Origin: Salisapilia sapeloensis CBS 127946
Lineage: Eukaryota; Protista; Oomycota
Direction of reading: 5' to 3'
DNA: 33,739 bases
Assembly: GCA_023334545.1 (NCBI GenBank)
Contig: JAADVB010000208.1
Span: forward strand, 1-33,739
Positions 12,186 through 20,962 of the stretch are shown here, piece after piece. The number at the start of each line of letters is the position of its first letter. Position 1 is the stretch's first letter. Under the pieces are notes generated by a model. That model ran no database searches. It was not told the DNA's origin and saw only the letters and a program-made list of their open reading frames with translations. The position numbers were made by a program, and so were the translations under genes.

Positions 12186-12649
12186 TTATTCAATGATGAG
12201 CTCGTCAATGGACCAGTCTTCAAAAGAGTTGTCCGGTAAATAGCGTCGGATGATGATCGGAATCTTCCGTTCACGTAGCTCCTTCATGGCAATCTTGAGT
12301 GGGTCCGTCTCGCCCTCAATGTCGACCATCACCGGAGCATTCATGCTATGAAATGCCATTCGAGTCAGCTGTCTACTTATGTATTGAATTTTTGTGCTGA
12401 AAGAGCATACCTGATTTGAAGAGCTCGCGTGCCGAGTACACGCGCACGTTCGTATTTGGTCATGTAATGCGTGGTGATGCGAGTGGCATTGGGCTGTTTG
12501 TGCGAAGCATCGAGGATCGCGACGTTCTGTTCGTCGTCATTGTCCTCTGGCTGATCATACATGTCCTCCTCGACTTCCTCCTCTACCTCTACCGGCTCTT
12601 CATCCTCAACGTCATTCCCAGCTCCGTCGTGATCATACTCTTCGTCCAT
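12186..12649 (-). CDS. RPB6: RNA polymerase I/II/III common subunit RPB6 (2 exons: 12649-12411, 12345-12186)
   Basis: Acidic N-terminus and [24 protein letters not shown] 65-nt GTATGC..CATAG intron restores [53 protein letters not shown]. Confidence 0.96.
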
Positions 12650-12863
12650 TTTCGCACGACTTTCGGTATCGTTTTGAATGGCTAATGCGATCGTACTTGA
12701 TCGAAACGATAAAATCCACAAGGGTCGTATACCCTTCAACCTAACTTCAAGGACACACCAGATTCGAAAGAGGGAAGAGAATGCATTGTCACTTGTACGT
12801 TTATTCCACTGTTCACGAAGAAGATCTATCGAATATATGGTCTACGGTATTCTTTTTATAAAA

Positions 12864-13448
12864 TCAGACAGACGTTGGCGTGGCTTGGATGCGAAGTCCA
12901 GCTAGATAGAGTTGATCAATTTCTTCATGAAACTCTTCTAGTTTGTCTTGGTCATGATGACGGTATTTAATCTTGGTACTTAGTGACTTTCTCCCACACT
13001 CGTGTACGAACATAGTTATGTTGTTTAGTAAGATGTCAAAGTCATCCATCCAGTTTACTGGCATGGGACACTTCTTGATCTTTTGCGCCAGATCAACAAT
13101 CCGGCGAACGAGGTGCCGAAGTTGCTGTCGCTTGCGTTTGAATACCAACTGTGTGACAGAATCAAATGCCATCTTCCCAAAAGCCACTGCGCCACATGCG
13201 GCGGAGACGCTTGGCTCACCAAGTACTGGGATATCCAATTGTGGGATTCGAGCTTTGAACGAGGCGTCACAGAGCTCGGCTGCTTTCACGAGTGCCACAA
13301 CTCGATCCCAGTACGTCTCATGCGACTCGATACTCCCAGAAGCCGTGGAATTTGTCACAGTATTCGTGTTACTGACGAAAAACGTAGTAGATGTTGATGG
13401 AGTGCTTCCGACGGAGGCTCCGGAGCTAGTGCGATGTGAAGCTTCCAT
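12864..13448 (-). CDS. Small protein: S/T/N-rich N-terminus + putative MLKL-NTD/RPW8/HeLo-like four-helix bundle (4HB-A)
   Basis: 194-aa ORF from a true ATG. IPVLG...KRQQLRHLVRRIVDLA...LLNNITMFV...KSLSTKIKYRHHDQDKLEEFHEEIDQL follows the helical pattern of MLKL_NTD-type domains. Paralogous to 14334-14927. Confidence 0.7.
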   Translation of the reverse strand: MEASHRTSSGASVGSTPSTSTTFFVSNTNTVTNSTASGSIESHETYWDRVVALVKAAELCDASFKARIPQLDIPVLGEPSVSAACGAVAFGKMAFDSVTQLVFKRKRQQLRHLVRRIVDLAQKIKKCPMPVNWMDDFDILLNNITMFVHECGRKSLSTKIKYRHHDQDKLEEFHEEIDQLYLAGLRIQATPTSV

Positions 13449-14284
13449 CCTTACCGTCCAAAGGGCTTAGTGTAGACAACGCGAAAGACAAAGTGAGTCG
13501 ACGGGAGTTGTGATGAAGCTATGGGCATAATCGACGGTTGTGCCGTGCATCTTAGAAGTGCAATTGGGAAAAGCTAAAAGTTTATAGGTCTATCGAAGAC
13601 CTGATGAACAAGTCATACGAGGGAGGTGCATTATGCGCTTAGATGGTCGCATGGGCATCCAAGTACAATAGCATACAGCCCAACGTTTGGGAGATCCAGA
13701 CATGTATTATAGAATTAGACTGTTCTTGCACTAGGTATCGAATGCAACAATTGACAAGTGCCAAGACCACTTCAAGTGCAAAAAGGATCCGTTAGGTCTA
13801 CCTATAGGTGTCAGAGAGCCTACTCTAGTAGTGTATCTATGTGATTGTATACTCTTTTGTACCACAAAACGCTTGTTCAGGGTAAAGATACGAGATGGAT
13901 AAGATACGCAAATGGTGCACGCCTGGTGTAATCCATCGAATGTCCCTAGAATATCACCATGGAAGTTTAACAGTGTTTTCTGTACCTTTCATGGCAGCTG
14001 ATTGATTGCAGGTAGCTGTGGGCCAACAAATGAAAGTAGGTGTGATTGCCAAGACGGTGATGGGATGCAAGCAGGTGCCATTAGCCTTTGTTCGCTACCT
14101 ACATGACCCCTTTCAAAGTAGGAAGATAATGCACGAAACTTCTAGGAAAGCGTTTGGAACTCGATGCATACAGATTTATGAGCAACTGCAGTAGATTTTC
14201 TCGTATATAGTTCCAACCACGTCACTGGCAGCCTGACCTGGTCGCTCTCATCTGAGTTGATTGAAAAGATCTCGCTACGTTTGA

Positions 14285-14300
14285 TCATTCTCCAATTTCT
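14285..14300 (+). promoter_or_regulatory. Oomycete core promoter INR+FPR
   Basis: TCATTCTCCAATTTCT lies 49 nt upstream of ATG 14334; near-canonical match. Confidence 0.7.
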
Positions 14301-14333
14301 AGCGCACAGCACACTGCATCAGGAAATTTCGAT

Positions 14334-14927
14334 ATGAATAACTTTGTGAGCGAAGCGAGTGACTTTGGTGTAATCATCTTGCTTCTATTTGCAGTTGTCA
14401 ATGCCCTCCAAGGCCGAAATCCTACGGTACCTCACGCCATCCACGGCCGGGCTTCAGAACCACCTCAGCTCACGGTTCAGTTAAACAACTACAATAGCAG
14501 CAATACAGAACAAGCGTCAAGTGCGCCACGAAAACTGGACATACCCAAGCTCGAACATCACTCGCATCTATTCGAGACTGCTGGAAGTAGGTCTGGAACA
14601 CCTTCAACGCACCCTCTAAAGGTTGTCGTCGACAATATCATTGCTAATGTTGGCGCCCACAAGTGCGACAAACTTCAATTTCTCGCTCGTCGTGTTCATG
14701 CCATCGCAAAGGCCATGTACGAGCATGACCAGTCCAGTCAGGTTACTCGCTGGTTTCACGCTACCTTTGATCTGTTAAAGAAGATTGAAAAGTTTACTCG
14801 TGACAGTAATCAAATGAAAGGCTTGAAGAAATGGTCTGGCAGATGTCACGATCGGAAACAATTGCGGCAACTGCATCTCGACATCGATCAACTACTGGCA
14901 GATCAATTCGAATCATCGTTTACCTAA
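14334..14927 (+). CDS. Small protein: hydrophobic/low-complexity N-terminus + putative MLKL-NTD-like four-helix bundle (4HB-B)
   Basis: 197-aa ORF with a canonical promoter. KCDKLQFLARRVHAIA...LLKKIEKFT...KGLKKWSGRCHDRKQLRQLHLDIDQLL aligns by eye with 4HB-A. N-terminal structure (signal peptide versus intron) is uncertain. Confidence 0.7.
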   Translation: MNNFVSEASDFGVIILLLFAVVNALQGRNPTVPHAIHGRASEPPQLTVQLNNYNSSNTEQASSAPRKLDIPKLEHHSHLFETAGSRSGTPSTHPLKVVVDNIIANVGAHKCDKLQFLARRVHAIAKAMYEHDQSSQVTRWFHATFDLLKKIEKFTRDSNQMKGLKKWSGRCHDRKQLRQLHLDIDQLLADQFESSFT

Positions 14928-14940
14928 GCACTTAGTCTAT

Positions 14941-15699
14941 TCAAAATAGATGTTTCTTCTTCTTTTGTTTCTTCCGCGCGACTTGGATGTTGCGTTCTTG
15001 CCAGTTGCTTTTGGACAGCTTCACGGGGCGATTGCCAATGTACCGTCCGTTCATTTCTCGCAACGCCTTGGCACAGTCAAAGGCATCACTGAAACTAACA
15101 AAGCCAAAGCCTTTCGACTTGTGCGTATGTTTATCTCGCACGACACGAGCTTTCTGGAAACTGTCGTATCGAACAAAAGACTGGGCGAGAAGCTCATCCG
15201 AGACTTCGTTGCCCAAGTCACCACAAAAGAGTCGAAAGTCATTTTCGGGCCATTCATCCAACGTCGGGTCTTCCCAGATTTGTCCCCCTGCCATTCGAAC
15301 GTGCTTTTTACCCTTTTTGTATGGCTGTAAAATGTTATTAGGCGGTGGAACGTCTGTTGGAAGACGTGGCTGAAAGGTGGCTGAAGCTGGGAGTGGTGCT
15401 GGCTGGTTATTAGCAGGCTGCGAGGGTGCAGATATGGCTGATCTGTGTGCATGAACAGCGTCGATCGTGTTCGGGACGGTGTGAGACGCTGGAGCTTGGG
15501 ATTGACTCGCTTGCGTATTAACTTTCTTGACTGGAGCAGGACGAGGTGGTGCCATGTATACCTTTGGAGCAGCCACCTTTTCCTTTTTAGCTAGTGGTGC
15601 CTTTATTTGCTCTTCTTCATCGTCTCGAGGCCTTTTCTTCGACTCGGTCTGCTCGAGCGATTTTAATTCAGCTTCAAATCGCGCCAATTCGTCATCCAT
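14941..15699 (-). CDS. RBM42: RRM protein, RBM42-like
   Basis: RMAGGQIWEDPTLDEWPENDFRLFCGDLGNEVSDELL...KSKGFGFVSF...REMNGRYIGNRPVKL, diagnostic of the RBM42 RRM. Confidence 0.9.
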   Translation of the reverse strand: MDDELARFEAELKSLEQTESKKRPRDDEEEQIKAPLAKKEKVAAPKVYMAPPRPAPVKKVNTQASQSQAPASHTVPNTIDAVHAHRSAISAPSQPANNQPAPLPASATFQPRLPTDVPPPNNILQPYKKGKKHVRMAGGQIWEDPTLDEWPENDFRLFCGDLGNEVSDELLAQSFVRYDSFQKARVVRDKHTHKSKGFGFVSFSDAFDCAKALREMNGRYIGNRPVKLSKSNWQERNIQVARKKQKKKKHLF

Positions 15700-16093: not shown

Positions 16094-17947
16094 ATGACAC
16101 TTCAAACGGCATCGTCTGAGCAACCAGCAGCTTCCAAGAAGGGTGTAAATGCTACCAACCAACAAATGTCGGAAGAAGACTTTACATCATTATTCGAAGC
16201 TGCCATGCAGCGAAGTCAGGAAAACTCCAATGCAACCAACCCTTCTAACGAGAAGAACATTCAGATCACTCCAGATGAGCAGCAAAAGTTCGTAAAAGCC
16301 ATGGGTGATCCAGCATTTCGATCGTTATTGCAGGATTATATGCAAGAAATCAGTGATCCAGCGCATCGAGAGGAAACAGAGCAGTATTTATCTCAATTAG
16401 AAAAGGAAGACAAGCTCCCGGAAGGTCGAGAGCTACTAACACCGATCCCAGGCTTTGTCCTTAAAGCGAATTTCGATAGTAGAAAGCAGGGTGGTCGTAA
16501 AGAGACGAGTAAATTATTCATTAACGTTTGCTCTCACGCAAAGATCCAGCCTCCATCTAGTACAACAGTATCTGGAAGCCAGTCGAATCCTCATGGTACG
16601 TCTTGGCACCTTCCATACTCTTTCGGTCCGGAACGAGCGGAGAAAGATCATGCTGGGCAGGACGTACCGACTTTTGATGTCTGTTTCCACCCTCGGACAG
16701 TCGACAGTGCTCTGGGTCGAATTGACTTTAAGGACATGGTCGCCAAGATCTGTCTCGAGGCTGCACAGACGAGTCTGAGGCAAGCGAGGAAGCAGACGTC
16801 GCTGACTATTGTCATGGACAGCTATCGAGTTCTGAAAGGAGTCAAGTACAAGACTGGAAGACCAGTATCCATGTGCATTCGGACGTCCCAATCAAAGGAG
16901 ACAACTTCTAGAGAGGCAAAGGCAAAAGAGATAGATCGTTCATTGATGCGTCATGAAGAAGTAGAGGAAAAAGCCGAGGTGAAAGTGGACAAGCCTATTC
17001 GTAAGGTCCAGATTGAGGAAGTGGACGATACACCGATTGTCCACAAGGACACTTCGAAGAAAACGTTTATGTATCGTGTGGTGCATCGTGGGAATTTCAA
17101 TCTTTTGAATCATACGAATAGTCGGAATGTCGATGCAGATCGGCCGAAGGAACTTGTCGTGGACATTGAATGTCCAGATCGAATGTCTGCTGCTGGATTG
17201 CAACTGGATGTGAGTGACAAGTGTATCAAACTAAACGATACAAAAGGAGTGTATGAGTCACTAGAAGTACAACTACCTTATGTGGTCGTGGAAGCGAAAG
17301 GAAGTGCTCGATTTGATAAGCAAAAGCAACAGCTCAAGGTCACGCTACCAGTGCAGCCACCTGTCCAAGAAGAGCGACGGATGGAGATGCCGATTGAAGA
17401 AGTGGAGTCGGAAGAAGAGGATACTTCAGTGACTTCTGAGAGCAAGTTGGAAGAAGAGGACAGTTTAGAAGCTTCGGAGGACAAGTGGGAAGTGGTGGAT
17501 AAAGTATCACCGCCTAAGAAGATGGAGGAGAAAGAGGATGAGTTCAAGTACTTGAAAGAGACGATGGGAATGGTGCAAGAAGACACTTTGTATCATACGA
17601 AAGCCAAGGAAAAGAAGCAAGTTACTTGGACGACACCAACGTATATCCTCCAAGAGACGGATTCGTGTCTATCTTACATCATCGACGTCGCGTCTATTCA
17701 AAAGGATACTGTTCACATAACGTCCACTTCAAATGGTTTTGATCTGGAGTTTAAAGCTGGAGAGTCGAATGCTCCGTATCACTTGACTGTCGATAATATG
17801 TCTACATCGGTCGCATCTGATCCGAAAGTGGACGTCGCGACGGAAAACATGGTGGTCATCTACACGAAACGCAGTCATCCATCGTCGACACCAAACGTCC
17901 CCGACCCACTCTCGTTTCAAAATGAACTCGTGTATGAATTGGATTAA
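16094..17947 (+). CDS. DNAAF2: Protein kintoun / dynein axonemal assembly factor 2 (PIH1 + CS-like domains)
   Basis: FRSLLQDYMQEISDP...EQYLSQLE, PIPGFVLK, KLFINVC, WHLPYS, FDVCFHP, RPKELVVDIECP, LPYVV...SARFDK...LKVTLPV, and C-terminal FQNELVYELD. Confidence 0.9.
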   Translation: MTLQTASSEQPAASKKGVNATNQQMSEEDFTSLFEAAMQRSQENSNATNPSNEKNIQITPDEQQKFVKAMGDPAFRSLLQDYMQEISDPAHREETEQYLSQLEKEDKLPEGRELLTPIPGFVLKANFDSRKQGGRKETSKLFINVCSHAKIQPPSSTTVSGSQSNPHGTSWHLPYSFGPERAEKDHAGQDVPTFDVCFHPRTVDSALGRIDFKDMVAKICLEAAQTSLRQARKQTSLTIVMDSYRVLKGVKYKTGRPVSMCIRTSQSKETTSREAKAKEIDRSLMRHEEVEEKAEVKVDKPIRKVQIEEVDDTPIVHKDTSKKTFMYRVVHRGNFNLLNHTNSRNVDADRPKELVVDIECPDRMSAAGLQLDVSDKCIKLNDTKGVYESLEVQLPYVVVEAKGSARFDKQKQQLKVTLPVQPPVQEERRMEMPIEEVESEEEDTSVTSESKLEEEDSLEASEDKWEVVDKVSPPKKMEEKEDEFKYLKETMGMVQEDTLYHTKAKEKKQVTWTTPTYILQETDSCLSYIIDVASIQKDTVHITSTSNGFDLEFKAGESNAPYHLTVDNMSTSVASDPKVDVATENMVVIYTKRSHPSSTPNVPDPLSFQNELVYELD

Positions 17948-17971
17948 TAAAGCAACATACACTTATGTCCT

Positions 17972-20512
17972 CTATTCCTTTGTCTGTCGTTGCTTTCGAA
18001 TGGTATCTACTAGTGTCGTATACGTCTGTTCTTGGAGATTCATGTCCGCTAGTTCCTTCTGTGCGACTTGTTTCATCCGTTTCGTACTATCCTTTTCTTT
18101 ATCATGCTTTCGTTTCTTACTTGCCTTCGGTTGCTCTGAGGTGACGACACTGGATGGTTTCGGCATTATCTCGTCCATGAAGCTCTGATACAATGTCGAC
18201 ATGGACGGAAGGACATGAGACGGAGCTTGAAGCAGTTCCTGCGCCTTGTTCGATGCGACGTGGGTCTTGGTAGGCGACGTCGATGGTTTCCTACTATCAG
18301 GTCGGAAGAGCTGCGATAGATGGTTCGATGAGCCACTCTTCTCGTCCTCTTGCGTCTGTCGGACGGACGTACCGAACTTCCACGCGTTGGACGTCGAGTC
18401 TAGGATGACGTAATCGTCGCATTGCTGTGGATGGAACGCCAAGGTTGAGACGGCATGTCCTGATGGGAGTGTAAAGGACGTTTTTTTTGTCGGCGTGGGC
18501 ACTTCTGGACGGAACTGACACACGACTGTATCGTCGTTAGACGTTTGTGTCCACAATAGGAATTCAGGTGCTTTCGGATGCGCTTGGATGCCAAACGCAG
18601 GTGATTTATCCCATGACGATGGTGCCGTCAACGACCAGTGGAGTGTCCACGTGAGCAAATCCCAGACTTGGACCGACTCGGCGCTTTGGAGGACCATGTA
18701 AGGGCATGTTTGTCCAGGGAAGAGGATGCTCGAGACACTGGTGCCATCTGCAGACGTGATGACGTGCTTGAGTGTGAGCTGCTGGACGTCCCACAACGTC
18801 ACGAGCTGTTTATAAGCCACGGCAAGGATCGACCCGTCTGGGGAGACACCACAGGACGTAATCGGGAGCTCGCGGTAGTGTACGGCGCTTTGACACGTCC
18901 ACTTTCTCGACTTATCCTTTGTCATTTCTTGCCCCCAGATCTTGAAGACACCCTTGGCATCGGTCGTGACCATCCAACAGTCATCTTGCTGATGCGAGAG
19001 GACAGGTCCGACGGCAATGCTGGTCACCTTGCTGTCATGAGGAGCATCGATGGACGTCGTGGGGACAAATGTTCCGTCACTGTCACGTTGCCAGAAGACG
19101 AGGCACTGCTCCATCGGTTTGGAGGATCCAAGACCGTCCATGTCTTCGACGTCAGTGTCCACATGGACACTCGTCGTCTCAGTCCAGTGCGAATGGAGCG
19201 TGGCAAGTGTTGTGCCTTTCGGACTAAATGCGACGAGCTCTGCGACGGTTTGCGGCATTTTGTCCGCAAGCTCCGTCTTGGACACTTGGTTACGAGAGGT
19301 AAGGGGTAGTGTCTGGAGGACATGATCCGTCATCGGGTCATAGAACTGGAGACGACCTTGGGACGATCCGGCATTGAGCGGAACGGACGATGTGACAGGG
19401 TCGAACACAAGTGTCCCCCATGGACACGTCTGGTGGACGTTTCCACCAGCACGAGCCAAGGCTTCGGCTGTCCACTGCACTTCCTTCGTCACGGGATCGT
19501 ACTGGAAGATCGTGTGATCCGACATGGAGACTGCGTAGTGTCCACCTGGAGATACGATCGTGTCCACATCGTTGGAGGACACGAGTCGAGGACGTACGGT
19601 CGACAAGGATGTGATTGGCGCCGTACGACGTGGGAGGTACGCGCGACGTCCAGAAGACAGGTGCCATCGGACGACGACACATTCGTGTCCGCCTGAGACG
19701 AGCCATTGTCCATCACTTGAATACACGACTGCTTGCACCGGATGCGCATGCCAATGGAGTGTGGAAGTGGACACGCTGATGTTGTCGCCGGATGTGGACA
19801 GATGGTATCGGCAAAGTTGTCCTTGTTGATCTCCGACAGTAAATTCCAACGCATTCGGGTGGACACTCGCCGTGGTAATGTTTCTCGTGTGTTGGAGTTT
19901 CGTGATGCGGTATCCATTCGGTTTCTCAGCGTCCATGAGGACACCAAAGACACGGTCATTGGCCGTGATGACAAGTACATCTCCTTCAAACGCTTCGTCG
20001 TCTTGCTGAATCCGAACACTTTGAACGTCAGCTGTCGTAAACGTCGTTTTCGAGTGTTCGACAATACTTCTCGAGTTTTTCTTCTTTCTTAAATTGTACT
20101 CCAACACATTCCATCTCGTCTTCTCATTCTGTTCTTTCGCAATCGCAATGTACACTATCGATGGACGATGCTGACTCACACCCATCCAAAGCAATTCCTT
20201 GCACTGGACAGAGTACGTTGCAAGAATTGTCTCTTCCGTGTAGTCCCATAGACAGATCTCGCCATTGGCATAGGCACAGAGAAGCTGGAGTGGGTTGAGA
20301 GCGTGCTGGCCAACGCTAACGACAGAACTGCGGTGGCTCGGACGGCATTCATGGAGAATACGGCCACTGGAAGACTGACGGACATACACGGTAGGGCCAA
20401 TGCGTTCGAATAGGAGCGTGCCGTCGCCAGAATAGACGAGTTTGGCATTCGCAGTCTGATTGTCCGTGTTCGGAGCCGTCAAAAGCTCCAAAGACGCATC
20501 ATTGGAAGACAT
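17972..20512 (-). CDS. WDR75: WD40 protein, WDR75/UTP17(NAN1)-like t-UTP subunit
   Basis: LHWHAHPVQAVVYSSDGQWLVSGGHECVVVRW...YLPR, GRLQFYD, IDAPHDSKVTSI, FSPDG-like SPDGSILAVAY...VTLWD. First ATG is 20512 (the track start at 20518 is TTG). Confidence 0.85.
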   Translation of the reverse strand: MSSNDASLELLTAPNTDNQTANAKLVYSGDGTLLFERIGPTVYVRQSSSGRILHECRPSHRSSVVSVGQHALNPLQLLCAYANGEICLWDYTEETILATYSVQCKELLWMGVSQHRPSIVYIAIAKEQNEKTRWNVLEYNLRKKKNSRSIVEHSKTTFTTADVQSVRIQQDDEAFEGDVLVITANDRVFGVLMDAEKPNGYRITKLQHTRNITTASVHPNALEFTVGDQQGQLCRYHLSTSGDNISVSTSTLHWHAHPVQAVVYSSDGQWLVSGGHECVVVRWHLSSGRRAYLPRRTAPITSLSTVRPRLVSSNDVDTIVSPGGHYAVSMSDHTIFQYDPVTKEVQWTAEALARAGGNVHQTCPWGTLVFDPVTSSVPLNAGSSQGRLQFYDPMTDHVLQTLPLTSRNQVSKTELADKMPQTVAELVAFSPKGTTLATLHSHWTETTSVHVDTDVEDMDGLGSSKPMEQCLVFWQRDSDGTFVPTTSIDAPHDSKVTSIAVGPVLSHQQDDCWMVTTDAKGVFKIWGQEMTKDKSRKWTCQSAVHYRELPITSCGVSPDGSILAVAYKQLVTLWDVQQLTLKHVITSADGTSVSSILFPGQTCPYMVLQSAESVQVWDLLTWTLHWSLTAPSSWDKSPAFGIQAHPKAPEFLLWTQTSNDDTVVCQFRPEVPTPTKKTSFTLPSGHAVSTLAFHPQQCDDYVILDSTSNAWKFGTSVRQTQEDEKSGSSNHLSQLFRPDSRKPSTSPTKTHVASNKAQELLQAPSHVLPSMSTLYQSFMDEIMPKPSSVVTSEQPKASKKRKHDKEKDSTKRMKQVAQKELADMNLQEQTYTTLVDTIRKQRQTKE

Positions 20513-20962
20513 GTTCAATTCAGTCGATCAGCAGCGAGCTCGAGTACAGGATGCAATAGAAAGAGACTTGGAAGTGGTACTACCGGCCGAGTTATAGCGT
20601 TCGTAGACCGGATCGAGGACCTTGATCGACCAATGTGGTTGGTTTTTGTTGGTTGTGGCGAGGGGGTATACAAAAAGCAAGATGTAAAGAGGGATAGTTC
20701 GTAACGGAATATATTTCCGTTATTTGTTCGAAAGAAATTGTATGAAAGCGAAAGAATGAGCTTTTCTAGTGCTTCCTGGTGACGATGATCATGCTCAAGC
20801 ACGTTTCTTGAAGCTCCTGTTCAAATCTCCTGTAGAACAGGATCCATTGTATTCATAAGAATGCGGTTGTCAATAAAAATAGTAGCGTGAAAGTTTATTT
20901 ATATCCTTTTCATTAACCGTTCTACCTTTTCTAAGCAGCATTTCCACTGCAGTGATCCAGCT

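Follow-up and report, generated by a model that had tools for sequence, protein, structure and literature searches.

The 33,739-nucleotide (nt) contig JAADVB010000208.1 of the oomycete Salisapilia sapeloensis CBS 127946—the whole stretch of DNA analyzed here, hereafter the window—carries two small genes, A and B, arranged head to head and flanked by RPB6 and RBM42. These are real, distantly related paralogous genes. We give roughly even chances to the view that they arose long ago, when an oomycete gene specific to this lineage was duplicated in inverted orientation, with a basic C-terminal bundle that is most probably a diverged MLKL_N/RPW8/HeLo-like domain. Their coding sequences (CDS) are as follows.

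12864–13448, minus strand: gene A CDS, a single-exon open reading frame (ORF) of 194 amino acids (aa)
14334–14927, plus strand: gene B CDS, a single-exon ORF of 197 aa

The two genes are separated by a spacer of 885 nt; an earlier, sequence-only reading of this DNA had described two divergent ORFs at these coordinates with this gap, and the ORF list agrees with it exactly. The same reading had paired A and B as paralogs by eye. That relationship proves to be statistically real (BLASTP E 5e-6, 26% identity across 121 aa, A 70–180 and B 67–187), and all of the blocks it had listed are aligned: LDIPxL, L..L.RR, W...LL..I..F, and R.HD...L...H..IDQL. In tblastn searches within the window, A and B are each other's sole match (E 6e-4), and neither tblastn nor a six-frame hidden Markov model (HMM) scan recovers a third paralog there. 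Because identity between the two proteins is only 26%, the duplication appears to be old; both ORFs are nonetheless intact, equal in length, and co-linear up to the C-terminus. At the nucleotide level, the sole trace of the duplication is a 14-nt inverted repeat (12910–12923 and 14880–14893, 86% complementary), which is an echo of the shared IDQL codons.

Gene B is a working gene with a core promoter, RNA, and a conserved ORF. Its promoter, of the oomycete type that combines an initiator with a flanking promoter region (INR+FPR), is recognized by a consensus match together with RNA starts.

14285–14298, plus strand: B core promoter, oomycete INR+FPR, TCATTCTCCAATTT

This site, 36 nt ahead of the B ATG, is the sole perfect match in the window to TCATTYYNCAWTTT, which we take to be the consensus of the Phytophthora core-promoter literature; with one mismatch permitted, the scan has a chance expectation of 0.56 matches. 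The RNA evidence consists of contigs from four runs, which are truly RNA since the RPB6 intron is spliced out of them and positions 13564–14276 lack any contig. Contigs start near the B promoter at 14277, 14297, and 14309, run unspliced and continuous through the B ORF at a depth of 28–37, and have ends that agree with that ORF. A related species contributes a separate 614-nt contig over 14309–14921 at ~95% identity, in which the B frame remains open (29 of the 32 substitutions applied). Comparison of the two yields a Nei–Gojobori ratio of non-synonymous to synonymous substitution rates (dN/dS) of 0.33 overall and 0.14 across residues 93–197, the predicted bundle, which is thus under purifying selection. 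The B frame also has the top codon-usage score among the six frames (+0.12).

Each protein resolves into an N-terminal extension and a basic helical C-terminal domain, with the following features.

13314–13448, minus strand: A residues 1–45, a Ser/Thr/Asn-rich acidic extension, probably disordered (S+T+N+Q 56%, isoelectric point [pI] 5.3)
13248–13313, minus strand: A residues 46–67, a predicted extra amphipathic helix ahead of the bundle (AlphaFold helix 2–23 of the modelled part, predicted local distance difference test [pLDDT] ~80)
13221–13238, minus strand: LDIPVL of A, immediately ahead of the bundle (DNA TTGGATATCCCAGTACTT; LDIPxL shared with B)
12867–13211, minus strand: A residues 80–194, predicted basic helical bundle (AlphaFold helices 39–82, 87–109, 112–117, and 119–145 of the modelled part)
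14364–14408, plus strand: B residues 11–25, hydrophobic helix, a putative signal peptide or membrane anchor (FGVIILLLFAVVNAL, Kyte–Doolittle hydropathy [KD] 2.81)
14415–14609, plus strand: B residues 28–92, a disordered, polar, fast-evolving linker (pLDDT <30)
14535–14552, plus strand: LDIPKL of B, inside the linker, the motif shared with A
14610–14924, plus strand: B residues 93–197, predicted basic four-helix bundle (AlphaFold helices 94–107, 112–131, 135–162, and 170–196)

The C-terminal domains of A and B very probably are four-helix bundles, as the sequence-only reading had proposed: AlphaFold predicts a compact up-down bundle of ~100–125 residues for both proteins, in A as one long helix and three more, plus the extra N-terminal helix of residues 46–67, which has no confident counterpart in the B model. 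The A model has a mean pLDDT of 70 and a predicted template modelling score of 0.62, and its bundle has a pI of 9.3; the B bundle (pI 9.6) is modelled at pLDDT 53–72 and whole B at a mean of 46. In both proteins, the bundle lies behind a long extension, again as first described; it begins near residue 80 of A and residue 93 of B and continues to the C-terminus, so that helix 1 is not at a free N-terminus.

The extensions themselves differ. No hydrophobic segment is found in A, where the maximum 19-aa KD over the whole protein is 1.26, compared with 2.12 at the N-terminus of B, which AlphaFold models as helix 10–26 and through which RNA passes without a splice. Residues 11–25 of B are kept in the related species save for V22I. 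The flanks of this segment, acidic on the N-terminal side and basic on the C-terminal side, favor placement of the C-terminal domain on the cytosolic side of a membrane, while its length of 15 residues equally suits a cleaved signal peptide. Further along the linker, residues 60–92 (14511–14609) show eight non-synonymous changes versus one synonymous change relative to the related species; the resulting dN/dS of 2.75, from small counts, indicates relaxed or positive selection. The LDIP of B is PDMP in that species, with two of the four paralog-shared residues changed, and since this is a close relative of B the motif is not strongly constrained.

The earlier assignment of these bundles to the MLKL/RPW8/HeLo class is supported by three methods with different inputs, on whose agreement we favor it: we infer, at somewhat better than even probability, that A and B belong to the MLKL_N/RPW8/HeLo superfamily as far-diverged members. 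In a protein language-model atlas, the named neighbors of A, of B, and of the B bundle are MLKL_N, MCAfunc, RPW8, and SesA clusters. Oomycete MLKL_N clusters of 135 aa rank at the top, at 0.92 for A (180 features), 0.89 for B (164 features), and 0.93 for the B bundle (189 of 256 features, a range reached by nine of 10 true family members versus one to two of 10 chance matches, on a scale not calibrated for protein parts). Among Pfam profiles, the best match of the A domain is PF17111, a fungal N-terminal domain that occurs in Monascus PigL; this match is sub-threshold (E 0.064–0.11, 12–13 bits against a cut-off of 27.2) and begins at the Gly/Ala-rich first helix of A. Structural comparison points the same way. 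Foldseek against Swiss-Prot (550,129 models) places RPW8-like 3, RPW8-like 1, and RPW8.2 at ranks 2, 3, and 6 (E ~1, probability 0.5–0.8), and against the AlphaFold DB clusters it returns "Fungal N-terminal domain," "Mixed lineage kinase domain" (residues 7–161), residues 3–123 of a kinase, and Rx_N (E 0.2–0.5). Among natural proteins, the NRG1.1 CC-R domain gives both models their best match over a whole domain, at a root-mean-square deviation of 2.7–3.2.

A number of results weigh against this assignment. The Pfam profiles at its center, PF22215 (MLKL_N), PF05659 (RPW8), and PF14479 (HeLo), have no match even at E 10 with whole proteins or domain pieces; PF17111 is the only match among the profiles of this class, and a sub-threshold one. 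Whole-domain VIA-align Z scores (NRG1.1 CC-R 9.5/9.2, MLKL 8.8/8.3, AtMLKL3 8.5, Rx 8.5) all fall under the value of ~13 below which Z is uninformative for helical bundles, and unrelated bundles (Cbl TKB, designed proteins, IE1, SPECT) equal or exceed them at Z 10–11. Foldseek E-values reach only 0.2–1; against the Protein Data Bank (PDB), Foldseek returned generic helical matches only, as did a shape search of the atlas. TNFAIP8-like clusters also appear among the language-model neighbors of the proteins, at 0.83–0.87. The AlphaFold models were built on a two-sequence alignment. The bundles are C-terminal, unlike those of characterized executioners, in which helix 1 lies at the extreme N-terminus, and the hydrophobic N-terminus of B could mean secretion, a poor fit to a cytosolic executioner.

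Sequence searches count on the same side. Word-based homolog searches with A and B across 5.8 billion clustered proteins gave zero matches, as did an exhaustive HMMER search of an A+B profile against 1.84 billion representatives; a PDB sequence search returned chance matches only (RNF213, CSF1, ATR1, designed proteins), and a scan of Joint Genome Institute metagenomes with back-translated motifs found no relative. The protein collections searched do not hold the proteins of the source genome itself, and RBM42 (14941–15699) is at most ~51% identical to any other oomycete protein in the 5.8-billion-protein collection; the orphan status of A and B is therefore partly due to sparse sampling of the lineage. 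This lineage appears to be poorly sampled and roughly equidistant from Phytophthora, Pythium, and Lagenidium. The class assignment thus stands on the agreement of atlas, PF17111, and fold matches, and not on profile significance or on structural scores above noise.

Gene A is less secure as a gene than B: no RNA over it is demonstrably sense, which weighs against the favored explanation. Its frame has the top codon-usage score of the six (+0.13, close to that of B), and an in-frame stop lies seven codons upstream of its ATG. An INR-like TCACTTT is found 48 nt upstream of the ATG; the window scan with the INR+FPR consensus gave no match at A. RNA over A is sparse, at a depth of ~3, with a strand that is not readable except for one contig; in the related species, RNA also covers 13204–13412 within A. 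The one strand-readable contig is antisense and spliced.

12963–13028, plus strand: 66-nt GT..AG intron of an RNA antisense to the 3′ part of A (the contig skips 66 nt)

The intron (GTATTT...TTTAG) is carried by contig 12833–12961/13028–13080 of run X2. Because its ends are canonical on the plus strand and non-canonical on the minus strand, the transcript spanning 12833–13080 is antisense to A. It lacks a convincing ORF, its reading frame stopping just upstream of the splice junction, and may be a natural regulator of A. A plus-strand ORF of 165 aa that overlaps A was considered as a gene in its own right and is ruled out by its codon score (~0.01 or below), by its stop just before the splice junction, and by its lack of paralogy.

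Between the two transcribed regions lies a stretch free of RNA.

13564–14276, no strand: RNA-silent spacer, no contig in any of the four RNA runs

Within it there is no Rfam match, and a repeat scan shows nothing meaningful beyond the IDQL-codon echo. The proposal that A and B share one promoter region is not borne out by this ~700-nt silent interval, nor by a depth over B ~10 times that over A, contig depth being a poor measure of expression. With transcribed regions ~700 nt apart and RNA depths differing ~10-fold, there is no sign in these data of A and B acting together. The organism is represented by a single DNA data set.

The flanks of the pair are those named in the sequence-only reading. 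RPB6 matches PF01192, and its 65-nt intron (12346–12410) is removed in the RNA contigs; RBM42 matches RRM_1, and its nearest relatives, from Phytophthora and other oomycetes, are labelled RNA-binding protein 42. The A stop is ~125 nt from the RPB6 ORF, and the B stop is 14 nt from that of RBM42. With neighbors abutting both ORFs and no kinase, NLR, or amyloid fusion, the absence of a partner domain holds as originally described. That such a stand-alone bundle is unusual holds less well: no partner domain is present here, but the atlas contains oomycete MLKL_N proteins of 135 aa. B and RBM42 are convergent (14927–14941, 14 nt between stops), and RNA contigs cross both, so their 3′ untranslated regions must overlap.

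The surrounding block of housekeeping genes (ETF-alpha, EGF, RPB6, RBM42, PIH1, WDR75) is conserved. In Lagenidium giganteum, Pythium oligandrum, and one Logan contig, the order EGF–RPB6–gene X–RBM42–WDR75 is kept, where gene X is a conserved oomycete coiled-coil gene of 191–222 aa with no Pfam family and with the position and orientation of B; Phytophthora ramorum has the same genes, with gene X shifted elsewhere in the block. The gene X loci are as follows.

L002, 9053–9628: gene X
L003, 8936–9604: gene X
L006, 8849–9493: gene X
L001, 11800–12408: gene X

Gene X is absent from the window by BLAST and six-frame HMM scan, and A and B occupy its place. Conversely, A and B are absent from all six fetched loci. 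The A/B pair is thus a newcomer, specific to this lineage, in a conserved block of housekeeping genes. Separately, PIH1 (plus strand) and WDR75 (minus strand), at 16094–20518 with 25 nt between their ORFs, are inverted relative to the order by RBM42 in Pythium oligandrum and Lagenidium.

The position of B invites the explanation that A and B are simply diverged orthologs of gene X, since B sits exactly where the 191–222-aa gene of Lagenidium, Pythium oligandrum, and the Logan contig does, and in the same orientation; a related suggestion would make them exons or fragments of a decayed tyrosine kinase-like (TKL) or MLKL-like kinase gene. Both are hardly credible. An hhalign comparison of A+B with the gene X family gives a probability of 0.15%, and no BLAST or HMM match is found in either direction. 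Neighbors at 14 nt and ~125 nt leave no room for a kinase, the RNA of B is unspliced, and neither Pfam nor the six-frame HMM scan detects a kinase signal.

More weight attaches to the idea that the proteins are orphan, lineage-specific bundles outside the MLKL/RPW8/HeLo class, having converged on a common fold with a function such as adaptor, scaffold, or lipid binding. This is possible, if on the unlikely side. All sequence and profile searches being empty, structural matches to many unrelated bundles being as good or better, and the TNFAIP8-like neighbors in the atlas would all be expected of such proteins; however, three methods without common inputs point to one superfamily and not to a random mix of bundles, and the 189 of 256 atlas features shared by the B bundle lie where true members are found far more often than chance matches. 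Rather doubtful is the proposal that only B is functional, A being silent or decaying at a locus that mainly yields antisense non-coding RNA, with no two-component module. The antisense orientation of the sole strand-readable RNA over A, its shallow depth relative to B, and its lack of an INR+FPR match fit this proposal. On the other side, A has kept its 194-codon ORF open while diverging to 26% identity, the frame has the highest score of the six and is preceded by an INR-like element, and the related species also has RNA over part of A.

It is distinctly improbable that B is a secreted, effector-like protein with a cleaved signal peptide and a rapidly evolving linker, and A an intracellular or decaying paralog. 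At 15 residues, the hydrophobic stretch is nearer in length to signal peptides than to transmembrane spans, and small residues (VNA/LQG) come after it; the linker evolves quickly, the genes are lineage-specific among housekeeping genes, and phmmer gives a weak match of the B bundle to the Hyaloperonospora effector ATR1. That match, at E 1, is at chance level, however, and the sequences contain no RxLR-dEER, LxLFLAK, or CHxC motif and no RXLR or WY Pfam match even at E 10. Comparison of A, B, and the B ortholog shows no conservation of the Trp and Tyr positions; the putative signal peptide has an acidic N-region, and A lacks any signal peptide.

Under the favored interpretation, an old duplication of a lineage-specific gene encoding an MLKL_N/RPW8/HeLo-like bundle, the duplication product would have entered a block of housekeeping genes that is otherwise conserved. 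Each protein would consist of a basic bundle of ~105–115 residues and, ahead of it, an N-terminal extension that is disordered and evolves fast. The bundle would be the working part and, by analogy with MLKL, NRG1, and HeLo, may act on membranes through the basic face of helices 1 and 2, while the hydrophobic N-terminal helix of B would place that protein at or across a membrane. In the characterized members of this class, helix 1 has to be free at the N-terminus. An extension of 80–92 residues would block that free end, serving as a cap or a targeting device, and because of this block A and B may be kept inactive, or have some other function at membranes, until the extension is displaced or lost. 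Any membrane activity, any activation step of this kind, and any joint action of A and B are putative.

A more specific scheme treats the genes as a matched pair, with B membrane-anchored and A soluble and held off by its antisense RNA, in which contact between the two or removal of the extension near LDIPxL would free a pore-forming bundle. We regard this as very improbable; if true, the pair would amount to a switch for regulated cell death or self/non-self recognition, with a C-terminal executioner, of a kind not described in oomycetes. The executioner/inhibitor or allorecognition roles originally suggested for the pair are likewise low-probability speculation.

Regulated cell death has hardly been studied in oomycetes, and our literature searches turned up no paper on MLKL-like or HeLo-like proteins from these organisms, while domain databases suggest many MLKL-like heads on oomycete kinases. 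A pair consisting of bundles alone would offer a simple handle on the question of whether this fold, in its oomycete form, attacks membranes at all, and a capped bundle, with one copy tethered by a hydrophobic helix, would bear on the control of a bundle whose N-terminus normally has to be free. Should the fold assignment be wrong, A and B would be a pair of orphan genes confined to this lineage, and of modest interest.

Among known systems, the RxLR/WY effectors such as ATR1 resemble A and B in being small, helical, and lineage-specific, and B shares with them a signal-like segment and a fast-evolving region. They differ in that A and B have neither RxLR-dEER nor a WY profile match, A has no signal peptide, and the B bundle is under purifying selection. 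Fungal HeLo, HeLo-like, and SesA domains (PF14479, PF17111, PF17107) begin with a small-residue N-terminal helix that the Gly/Ala-rich helix 1 of A resembles; fungal N-terminal domains lead the AlphaFold DB cluster matches, and SesA is among the atlas neighbors of B. Unlike the bundles described here, these fungal domains occupy the N-terminus of their proteins and usually have an amyloid motif or an NLR as partner.

The closest likenesses are to MLKL_N and RPW8. MLKL_N (PF22215), represented by the 135-aa oomycete clusters and the plant MLKLs, is likewise an up-down four-helix bundle of ~105–120 residues with a basic helix-1/helix-2 region; it provides the top language-model neighbors, and the solved bundles of MLKL and AtMLKL3 match across the full domain (Z 8.3–8.8). 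However, A and B have no significant profile match to it and no brace or kinase domain, their bundle is C-terminal behind 80–92 residues, and B adds a hydrophobic N-terminal helix. The RPW8/CC-R family (PF05659; RPW8.2, HR1–4, NRG1.1) includes small stand-alone proteins of similar size, and the hydrophobic N-terminus of RPW8.2 serves membrane targeting, a likeness to B. This is a plant family with no sequence-level link to A or B, and its hydrophobic segment is helix 1 of the bundle, whereas that of B lies ~65 disordered residues from the bundle. If the assignment holds, A and B would represent an architectural variant of these systems—a C-terminal bundle behind an extension, with an anchor in one copy and an inverted duplication—and not a new kind of system.

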